Shown here in pieces: positions 9,175-11,800 of a DNA stretch of 64,000 nt. The first letter of the stretch is position 1; each line of letters starts with the position of its first letter. The notes beneath the pieces were generated by a model that searched no databases, was not told the origin of the DNA, and worked only from the letters and a program-made list of their open reading frames with translations. The DNA lies in sequence record OQ411014.1, one strand, 5' to 3'. A program made the translations under genes and the position numbers.

Positions 9175-11800
9175 CTTATTTGATGATGATGATTTTCAGG
9201 GTGAAGATTATTCTCGTACGAAAAAACCTGGGGTAAAGATCGACTATACCCCAGAAATGATAGAAGAGTTACGTAAATGTAAAGAAGACCCAATTTACTT
9301 CATGGAGAACTATTTCTATATTGTAAGTAAAGGTGGTGAAATACTTTTCAAACCTTATGAGTACCAAAAGCAGATGGTTCGAAACTTCCAGAATTATACG
9401 AACAACGTAATGCTAACTGCTCGTCAGATGGGGAAAAAATTAGTAAACAGTACACCAATATTAACTCCCCACGGATTCACAACGATGGGTGAATTGAAAG
9501 TGGGTGATGTGATTTATGGAGCCGATGGTAAGAAAACTACAGTTAATTACATAACTGATCCTAACGACCAATTGAAACTATATGATATAAAATTTAGTAA
9601 TGGTGAAACAATCACTGCATGTGAGGATCATCTATGGAACATCAGTACCACTGATTGGCATCGTTATGGTAATAAGGTAAAAACCCTTAGTACTAAAGAA
9701 ATGGTCCACTTACTAAACAAACTAAGTTCACGTACTAAACCTTCCCGTATGTTCATTGAGCATACAAAGGTGGTAGAATTTGACGAACAGCATGTTCATA
9801 TTGATCCATATATTCTTGGTCTATGGTTGGGAGATGGTCATTCTGCTAACCACAGAATAACTCACCATGTGGATGATTATACATTTTATAAAGAATGCTT
9901 GAACGAAAATATTAGCGAGTTCAAACTTGATAACAGAACCGAATGTACAGGTTACAGTAACTTAAATTTCGAGCATCATTATTCTCTTAAAAATAATAAA
10001 CACATACCGCATGAATATATATACAATAGTGTTCATGTACGTACTGAGATCCTAAAAGGATTGATGGACACTGATGGTTATTGTAGTATAGACGGTAATA
10101 CCCAGCAGTTTTATAGTTCAAACAAACATTTAGCTGAGGCAGTACGACTCATATTATCAACTCTTGGTATTAAGAGCACAATTACGTTTAAAGATAATGA
10201 CCACAAAGGATGTTATGTAGTTACCTTCAGTACTAGTGTTGAGGTATTCAAACTACCAAGAAAGTTGGAACGTCAGAAGAGTCGCCAATGTGATCATCCA
10301 AAAAATCACCGCTTGTATATTGAAAGTATTACTGAATCAACAAGTACTGAAATGGGGCGTTGCTTACAGGTTGATAACGAAGACCACCTATTTTTATGTG
10401 GAGAAACATTGATACCCACACATAACACAACCGTTGCAGCAGCCTTTATACTATGGTATGCTATGTTCAATGATACTAAGACTATCCTACTTCTTGGTAA
10501 CATTTTAAGTACTGCAAAAGAAATCATGGAACGTATTCAGTTCGCATATGAAATGTGTCCTGACTTTATCCGTGATGGTGTTGTAAAATATAACGTACAA
10601 ACTGTACACTTCGAAAATAAATCACGTATCATTGCACGTGCGACTACTCCGTCCGCTGCTCGTGGTCTATCTGTAAACTTACTATACCTTGATGAATTTG
10701 CATTCGTACAAGAATCTTACCAGTCTGAATTCTGGTCAGCAGTATCACCAACACTTGCATCTTCAGATGGTAGATGTATAATCACTAGTACGCCGAACAC
10801 CGAATACGACCAGTTCGCTACTATATGGTATGAATCACAATCTCACGTTATGGAAGACGGTACTCAATTGGATGAAGGTGGTCCAGGTAAAAACGACTTC
10901 AAAGGGATACAGGTTACATGGGATTGGCATCCAGATAGAGATATCGAATGGGCTAAGAAAGAAGAATACAAAATTGGTACATCTAAGTTTAAGCGTGAAT
11001 ATAACTGCGAATTCGTAACGTACCAAGAAACACTAATCAACAGTGTTAAGTTAACTGAAATTAAATCCAGAACAGTACGGGAACATATCAGACAAACTGA
11101 TGATGTACGATGGTTTAAACCTATTGAGTACGGAATGACGTACTGTGTTGCACTTGACCCTGCTGGTGGTACTGGTGGTGATGATGCAGCTATACAAGTT
11201 TATGAACTCCCCACAATGCGACACGTTGCAGAATGGAGACATAACATGTTCCGAATACCTGAACAGATTAAACTCTTGCATAGGATTCTATCCGAACTGG
11301 CTTATCAAATGCATAAGTTAGGTGCAAAAAATATCGAAGAACACTTGTACTGGTCAATTGAAAGTAATACAATCGGTGAAGCAGCAGTACTGGAGATTCA
11401 GCACATAGGTATTGATGCATTCCCTGGAACATTAATTAATGAACCAAGACGTACTCGTACTGGTAAAATCCGTAAAGGTATGGTAACGACACGTAGTACT
11501 AAAAAGACTGCTTGCTTCCATATGCAAAAGCTAATGGAGACATTCAGGATGGAAGTTGCAAGTAAAGCACTACATAGACAGTTGAACGATTTCATACGTT
11601 CTGGTACTGAAGATGGTGTCTTTAAAGCAAAACTAGGTATGAAAGATGACTTAGTATCTGCGGCGTTGTTAATTGTGAGAATGTTTGATATCATTGCGAA
11701 ATTCGAAGACAACACTGCTGAAGTAATGCGTGAAACCTTAGAGGAACACGATGAAACATACTTCATGCCGTTGGGATATCTAATGTCTTACAACAGATAA
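9164..11800 (+). CDS. terL: Terminase large subunit (gp17-like) with intein
   Basis: YEYQ Q motif, Walker A RQMGK/TT split by intein, Walker [10 protein letters not shown], nuclease LDPAGG and KDDLV. Confidence 0.95.
9437..10426 (+). mobile_element. Class 3 intein (330 aa) with LAGLIDADG homing endonuclease
   Basis: Starts [11 protein letters not shown], block B DHLW, block F GRCLQV, ends IPTHN before Thr+1; LGLWLGDG and LKGLMDTDG motifs. Confidence 0.92.

Follow-up and report, generated by a model that had tools for sequence, protein, structure and literature searches.

A predicted class 3 intein with an N-terminal lysine in the terminase Walker A motif of Escherichia phage EJP2

Results

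The terL locus and its insert

We analyzed a window of 64,000 nucleotides from record OQ411014.1, in which positions 9164–11800 are 100% identical to the large terminase gene (terL, EJP02_273) of Escherichia phage EJP2, an Asteriusvirus with a 349-kb genome that infects E. coli. The gene carries the bare GenBank label "terminase large subunit", and in the paper describing the phage its product was used for a tree, with an intein nowhere mentioned (PMC10213699). The reading frame is single and uninterrupted, and it contains 990 nt (330 codons) lying between the Lys and the Thr of the Walker A motif. The features discussed below all lie on the plus strand:

9164–11800, plus strand: terL precursor open reading frame, 878 aa, T4-type large terminase with predicted intein
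9164–9436, plus strand: N-extein, 91 aa, ending in the Walker A residues RQMGK
9437–10426, plus strand: predicted class 3 intein, 330 aa, HINT splicing domain with embedded LAGLIDADG homing endonuclease
9437–9439, plus strand: intein residue 1, Lys (AAA), not a nucleophile
9629–9637, plus strand: block B, His65 (B:10), Leu66 and Trp67 (B:12, the W of the WCT triplet)
9812–9838, plus strand: LAGLIDADG motif 1, ILGLWLGDG, residues 126–134 (catalytic Asp133 at 9833–9835)
10049–10078, plus strand: LAGLIDADG motif 2, residues 205–214 (catalytic Asp213 at 10073–10075)
10361–10363, plus strand: block F:4, Cys309 (TGC), predicted initiating nucleophile
10418–10429, plus strand: block G, Thr328 (G:5), His329 and Asn330, followed by Thr+1 of the C-extein
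10427–11800, plus strand: C-extein, 457 aa, remaining ATPase domain and nuclease domain of TerL

The precursor reads, in order, RQMGK, then KLVNSTPIL...DHLW...GRCLQVDN...IPTHN, then TTVAAA. At the upstream junction (9422–9439) the DNA is CGT CAG ATG GGG AAA AAA, and the assignment of the two lysine codons decides what the first residue of the insert is. In phage 121Q and in Erwinia phage Hallingskeid, terL is intein-free and encodes RQMGK followed directly by TTVAAA, with one Lys codon and then two Thr codons. Because these empty alleles have a single Lys, only one of the two codons belongs to the extein and the insert begins with the other, and the boundaries at 9437 and 10426 that the original prediction had drawn by splitting RQMGK from TT are fixed by comparison with intein-free relatives. 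A second line of evidence comes from a metagenome (run X4), in which a 22-kb contig from a phage about 97% identical to EJP2 skips exactly 990 nt at this site. The aligner places the joint at 9432/10423, with an ambiguity of a few bases in the A-rich junction; the empty allele there probably reads GGT AAA ACA, so that, given one substitution, this is the same event as a skip of 9437–10426. The skip thus fixes independently the length of the insert and, within the few-base ambiguity of the aligner, its ends.

Two ways in which the assignment of residue 1 could be wrong had been named beforehand, that both lysines belong to the extein or that the run of six A's is a sequencing error, and neither holds up. 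The first is ruled out by the empty alleles of 121Q and Hallingskeid. As to the second, contigs from two other studies (X3, covering 9164–9709, and X5, covering 9323–9578) contain the AAA AAA junction without differences, and an error is ruled out by the same letters in contigs of three independent studies together with two diverged homologues that also begin with Lys.

The exteins behave as the two parts of one terminase. The C-extein is the sole part of the reading frame matched by 50 intein-free relatives in megablast searches and is recognized by Pfam Terminase_6N (36.8 bits; cut-off 22), and the R, G, and K of RQMGK at the end of the N-extein are invariant across 56 homologues. When joined, the exteins align over their full length with TerL of 121Q and Hallingskeid at 77–90% identity, and they give a restored Walker A motif together with an ATPase and nuclease body, as in a T4-type large terminase. 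The GC content of the insert (about 35%, vs. 38–41% in the C-extein) is near that of surrounding genes and is not informative on foreign origin.

Splicing motifs and homologues

A word search with the intein region returned 2773 proteins at E ≤ 0.001, those listed being mostly proteins of about 860 aa with Pfam terminase domains, and 120 of these homologues were retrieved for tabulation. The insert directly follows GK in 118 of the 120. All 120 have His at B:10, Trp at B:12, Cys at F:4, and Thr, His, and Asn at G:5 to G:7, the +1 residue is without exception Thr or Ser, and the same block invariance was found in a MAFFT alignment of 56 sequences. Among solved structures, the sequence is matched best by two class 3 inteins that have been studied experimentally, MchDnaB1 (6rix, E = 3.7e-16; 6riy) and MsmDnaBi1 (6bs8, 2.4e-14). 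Both halves of the splicing domain align with these DnaB inteins (HLW with HQW, RCLQVDN with RCVEVDN, IPTHN with VPTHN), such that His65 to Trp67 fall on HQW and Cys309 on the Cys of RCVEVDN in MchDnaB1, and the N-terminus aligns residue for residue, starting right after GK.

Generic profile models speak neither for nor against the assignment: Pfam Intein_splicing (15 bits vs. a threshold of 35.8), NCBIfam TIGR01445 (16.8 vs. 24.5), Hint, and PT-HINT all stayed below threshold on the EJP2 intein. This accounts for the bare annotation, as pipelines built on such models miss the element, and it means that recognition rests on class 3-specific homologues.

As defined by Tori et al. (2010, PMC2807308), class 3 inteins lack a nucleophile at residue 1, carry the WCT triplet, and are followed by Ser or Thr at +1; their splicing depends strictly on the block F Cys and proceeds via a thioester branch formed there. 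The EJP2 insert has a non-nucleophilic residue 1, the triplet Trp67/Cys309/Thr328, His65, His329-Asn330, Thr+1, and, in the structural model described below, a HINT fold. The original prediction had read DHLW, GRCL, PTHN, and Thr+1 as a class 3 signature, a reading that the invariance in all 120 homologues and the matches to class 3 DnaB inteins bear out. Taking boundaries, motifs, homology, and modeled fold together, we are highly confident that this is a class 3 intein at the Lys-Thr site of Walker A, with splicing chemistry expected by analogy to characterized members of the class.

One could instead envision a standard class 1 intein that truly starts at one of the Ser and Thr residues found four to five positions downstream of the proposed start, such as Ser5 or Thr6 of KLVNST, in which case Lys1 would be a boundary artifact. 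However, neither the empty alleles nor the exact 990-nt skip can accommodate additional extein residues, and a splice at Ser5 would add four residues to the P-loop; positions 3 to 5 vary among homologues in which the WCT triplet is invariant, and the residue-by-residue match to class 3 DnaB inteins begins right after GK; we regard this alternative as having a vanishingly small probability. The sub-threshold scores of the generic models and the annotation of the gene as a plain terminase might also be expected of a decayed, non-splicing insertion retained in the protein, or of a terL pseudogene. Yet the catalytic positions are all intact and strongly conserved, the reading frame is uninterrupted, and an unspliced insert would part GK from T in the P-loop and abolish ATP binding in a phage that is nevertheless viable (PMC10213699), and decay seems extremely improbable. 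EJP2 is a lytic phage that forms plaques and has been propagated (PMC10213699); its TerL must therefore function, and the insert must be removed.

Predicted fold and endonuclease domain

In a confident AlphaFold2 model (pLDDT 92.1, pTM 0.90) built with ten extra residues at either end, the intein is predicted to consist of a HINT domain and a LAGLIDADG endonuclease. The best Foldseek matches of the model are the bifunctional inteins PI-SceI (E = 1e-17), TliVMA, and PI-PfuI; its splicing domain matches the class 3 DnaB inteins MchDnaB1 and MsmDnaBi1 with a target TM of about 0.8, and its central domain matches I-DmoI. In the sequence, Pfam LAGLIDADG_3 scores 44 bits (2.6e-11; cut-off 22.5) and Hom_end 26 bits, also above its cut-off. 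The LAGLIDADG motifs are intact, as had been supposed: both retain their acidic residues, with Asp at the position of Asp133 in 54 of 56 homologues and at that of Asp213 in 50 of 56.

Lysine at position 1

Among 120 homologue clusters, residue 1 is Ala in 55, Met in 52, Lys in 3, Ser in 3, Leu in 2, Arg in 2, and Gly and Glu in 1 each; the Met1 homologues mostly belong to one clade of 1423-aa proteins. Ala is thus the commonest residue and is probably ancestral, and the codon is GCT (Ala) in phages fENko-Kae01 and UE-S1 where EJP2 has AAA. Besides EJP2, two diverged homologues begin with Lys (P0004, 76% identity; P0009, 63%). On a maximum-likelihood tree of 56 inteins, built with residue 1 excluded from the data, at least 12 changes of residue 1 are required, and Lys has two or more origins, one shared by EJP2 and P0004 and one in P0009, which stands beside a Leu1 sister.

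The original prediction had called Lys1 unusual. This stands insofar as Lys occurs in a minority of 3 of 120 clusters, but it is not special, as the position varies freely and Lys has arisen at least twice. On these sequence comparisons, Lys1 is real, uncommon (about 2–4% of clusters), and situated at a nearly unconstrained position, and it appears mechanistically unremarkable. A full-text literature search for Lys1 in class 3 inteins returned nothing relevant, published tables of N-terminal residues being outside its scope; our description of Lys1 as rare but recurrent comes from the present tabulation.

Distribution and mobility

By tblastn, 726 phage records contain homologues of the EJP2 intein, those of Rak2, K64-1, Omega, and LittleE among them. 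The nearest in GenBank is Klebsiella phage fENko-Kae01, with 69.6% identity in the intein and 76.4% in the extein. Hallingskeid, whose extein is the closest to that of EJP2 (89.8% amino-acid identity), has no intein, and more distant phages do; the element is scattered among close relatives in a pattern that fits mobility and also precise loss. The X4 metagenome contains both states, an intein-minus contig at depth 31 with exteins about 97% identical to those of EJP2 and a plus contig identical to EJP2 (9433–10291) at depth 8.8. Plus and minus alleles of near-identical phages thus coexist in one metagenome, through recent gain or precise loss. The suggestion that the element may still be mobile is strengthened by this polymorphism, although precise loss would fit as well, and from the intact predicted endonuclease together with the plus and minus alleles we consider present-day homing likely.

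A conserved frameshift in the Walker A codons of related phages

Outside the window, we observed a conserved 1-nt frameshift in the same Walker A codons in 11 related phages (the junction itself was read in BF17 and Turkey5). These comprise ten near-identical Asteriusvirus genomes (BF17, WPEC3, WPEC5, EC.P1, Ecwhy_1, vB_Ec-M-J, fEgEco12, TH47, Turkey3, and CMSTMSU) and Turkey5, which is 88% identical. The 11 genomes match the 5' terL segment of BF17 over most or all of its length, and in 9 of them at least two terminase or packaging annotations lie under the match; TH47 has no annotation there, and CMSTMSU has one terminase reading frame among several short ones. The split annotations are caused by a single extra base, which lies six bases upstream of the intein insertion point (CAG ATG C GGA AAA ACA, vs. 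CAG ATG GGT AAA ACT in 121Q), and no second copy of terL was found in BF17.

In the 460 codons after the extra base, BF17 and Turkey5 differ at 145 synonymous and 20 non-synonymous codons when read in the +1 frame, vs. 3 synonymous and 173 non-synonymous in the zero frame; in the 87 codons before it, the zero frame gives 32 synonymous and 13 non-synonymous differences. Since the frameshift is conserved and both halves of terL are under purifying selection, these comparisons point to recoding rather than error or decay. The tRNAs of BF17 are two for Ser, one for Met, one for Asn, and two for Thr, plus a tRNA-like remnant that lacks the D-arm and has the anticodon UCU; none of them was seen to be a quadruplet decoder with an 8-nt anticodon loop, and the folded tRNA-Met has an ordinary 7-nt loop. 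Transcriptional slippage with loss of one A from the run of five is unlikely, as it would substitute Arg for the invariant P-loop Gly. A literature search turned up no description of the frameshift, and the paper on the fEgEco12 genome makes no mention of the terminase.

The nearest terL relatives of the BF17 clade (megablast, 5' part) are UE-S1, ph0011, and JNE01, all of which carry the intein, so a link between the frameshift and intein homing is conceivable. Under such a scenario the Lys-Thr codons would be a battleground in Rak2-like and Asteriusvirus phages, with EJP2-type inteins homing there today and the 1-nt insertion of BF17 and Turkey5 destroying the endonuclease target and forcing +1 recoding of terL. 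We think this unlikely; if true, it would amount to immunity against homing at the price of a programmed frameshift in an essential gene.

Discussion

The Lys-Thr boundary of the P-loop occupied by the EJP2 intein is the "classic" insertion site (Kelley et al. 2016, PMC5050341), and class 3 inteins are found in phage terminases and for the most part in P-loops (Tori et al. 2010, PMC2807308). Among characterized members of the class, MsmDnaBi1 and MchDnaB1 resemble it in their insertion into a P-loop right after GK, in having no nucleophile at residue 1, and in the block sequences HxW, RC-x-VDN, and PTHN. They are, in contrast, mini-inteins without an endonuclease, reside in a bacterial helicase, and begin with Ala, with Ser at +1 in MsmDnaBi1, whereas the EJP2 intein has a full LAGLIDADG domain, a phage terminase as host protein, Lys1, and Thr+1. 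By description, it is also like the Bethlehem DnaB intein, the prototype of class 3 (PMC2807308), which likewise comes from a phage, is of similar length (341 aa vs. 330 aa), has the WCT triplet and Thr+1, and lacks a nucleophile at residue 1, but differs in having Pro1 and a helicase as host protein; only distant sequence similarity is expected between the two.

Close kin are the TerL inteins of the Rak2-like jumbo phages (Rak2, K64-1, Muenster, KP13-7, UE-S1, JNE01, ph0011, and fENko-Kae01), which agree with it in site, architecture, and family and share 53–70% amino-acid identity, but have, in place of Lys1, Ala (fENko-Kae01 and UE-S1) or Leu (cluster P0010, of the KP13-7/K64-1 type). Beside these, the EJP2 copy is the most diverged member in GenBank, its nearest relative standing at 70%. 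Hint and LAGLIDADG domains were noted in the large terminases of Rak2 and K64-1 in the CBB phage paper in 2017 (PMC5259590). Farther away, mycobacteriophage TerL inteins at the "TerL1-a" site likewise interrupt a terminase at the classic Lys-Thr position (PMC5050341), and actinobacteriophages have class 3 TerL/Cas4 inteins (Kelley 2016; Gosselin 2025 preprint); class 3 inteins with LAGLIDADG domains are abundant in terminases. Homology to the Omega and LittleE inteins is still detectable, at about 32% identity, although the actinobacteriophage host protein is often of the Terminase_1 type and the phages infect another phylum, vs. the T4-type Terminase_6 of EJP2. Class 3 inteins in terminase P-loops have thus been known since 2010 and Rak2-like terL inteins since 2017.

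From characterized class 3 inteins we infer the following course of splicing. After translation, the thiol of Cys309 would attack the peptide bond between Lys(-1) and Lys1, assisted by His65 and Trp67, with formation of an internal thioester branch; the N-extein would then pass to the side chain of Thr+1, cyclization of Asn330 would free the intein, and an O-N shift would re-form RQMGK-TTVAAA, the ATPase site existing only once splicing is complete. The unspliced precursor would be expected to lack ATPase activity, as has been argued for other P-loop inteins (PMC6195587). Lys1 would have no chemical role in this scheme, and because residue 1 takes no chemical part it can be Lys; that the nucleophile of class 3 inteins is the block F Cys and not residue 1 likewise explains why the position is nearly free. 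The LAGLIDADG enzyme would be expected to cut the intein-free terL of co-infecting relatives, repair of which would copy the element in.

Alternatively, Lys1 could be functional, tuning the rate of splicing or coupling it to pH or redox state such that the intein would serve as a timer of DNA packaging. In the prototype class 3 intein, changing Pro1 to Ala, Ser, or Cys altered splicing efficiency (PMC2807308); oxidation reversibly blocks MsmDnaBi1 through its catalytic Cys (PMC6195587); the EJP2 intein has additional cysteines near its splicing blocks (Cys62 at block B:7, and Cys321); and a basic first residue, Lys or Arg, recurs across several lineages. Against this, position 1 takes eight different residues and changed at least 12 times on the tree of 56 sequences, and no change co-varying with it was found in the homologues, so a functional Lys1 appears very unlikely. 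Cys62 and Cys321 could in principle form a redox trap like Cys48-Cys118 of MsmDnaBi1, which is speculation by analogy; block B:7 is Cys in 23 of 56 sequences and Asp in 29. The proposal that the intein acts as a conditional packaging switch does not follow from dependence on splicing, as any P-loop intein must splice before the ATPase works, and we regard it as unsupported.

For EJP2 itself, the intein is mainly a point of annotation. The 878-aa "terminase large subunit" would be a precursor, with a mature TerL of about 548 aa, and TerL trees built with the intein included, such as that in the EJP2 paper, would mix the signal of the host gene with that of a mobile element. We thus conclude that the EJP2 TerL intein is a previously unannotated member of a very large known family, and that it brings no new type of biology. 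It does widen the set of first residues that class 3 inteins tolerate, by a well-documented natural Lys1 and the Arg1 of relatives, and the plus/minus polymorphism in the X4 metagenome would offer a natural system for intein homing among jumbo phages. The contrast within this large family between a nearly free position 1 and an invariant WCT triplet supports the accepted mechanism of class 3 inteins.

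Frameshifted terL in BF17 and Turkey5

A terL (large-terminase) stretch outside the window is shared by 11 Escherichia coli Asteriusvirus genomes, BF17 and Turkey5 among them, and in most of these terL is annotated in two pieces. The junction was read directly in BF17 and Turkey5, where the Walker A coding sequence contains one additional base (CAG ATG C GGA AAA ACA), 6 bases 5′ of the intein insertion point, and terL is thereby left in two frames:

L005:3488-3520 (BF17 stretch), terL Walker A frameshift site
L008:1708-1740 (Turkey5 stretch), terL Walker A frameshift site

When the downstream codons of the two phages were compared, the +1 frame contained 145 synonymous and 20 non-synonymous differences, whereas the zero frame contained 3 and 173, respectively. 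This synonymous excess, found in the +1 frame and not in the zero frame, indicates that the shift is conserved under selection, which points to a so far unreported +1 recoding event in an essential gene. No second copy of terL was found in BF17, nor was a quadruplet-reading tRNA found in this phage. Its tRNA cluster does contain a tRNA-like element immediately after tRNA-Ser(tga):

L025:8085-8163 (BF17 stretch), tRNA-like element, Rfam tRNA 32.6 bits

The element has no D-arm, its variable region is long and its anticodon is UCU. It drew no call from ARAGORN and is probably a decayed tRNA-Arg.

The EJP2 terL and its intein

In the EJP2 window, terL is preceded by an open reading frame, and three further features lie within terL:

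8497-9174, 225-aa ORF upstream of terL
9432-10423, intein gap in the empty allele of X4, from contig alignment
9620-9622, Cys62 of the intein (block B:7)
10397-10399, Cys321 of the intein, in FLCG

Because the 225-aa ORF overlaps the terL start (9164) by 11 nt, the gene arrangement suggests that the two may be translationally coupled.

Across the 56 aligned intein family sequences, Cys and Asp alternate at block B:7 (Cys in 23, Asp in 29), and Cys321 is conserved (44/56). Cys62 and Cys321 are possible candidates for redox partners of the catalytic Cys309.

The homologue search also matched a large, almost clonal set of metagenomic proteins (P0059-P0116), each of 1423 aa and from contigs of ∼100 kb, whose class 3 intein is 36% identical to that of EJP2, begins with Met1 and occupies a GK/S site. 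Their remaining Pfam matches are to intein and LAGLIDADG domains and not to a terminase domain; possibly an abundant phage of ∼100 kb encodes them, each with several inteins.

In X4, a public metagenome sequencing run, an intein-free terL allele is carried on a 22-kb contig (depth 31) with exteins ∼97% identical to those of EJP2, and the same metagenome holds an intein-bearing allele identical to EJP2 (depth 8.8). The two alleles constitute a natural plus/minus polymorphism that could serve homing studies.
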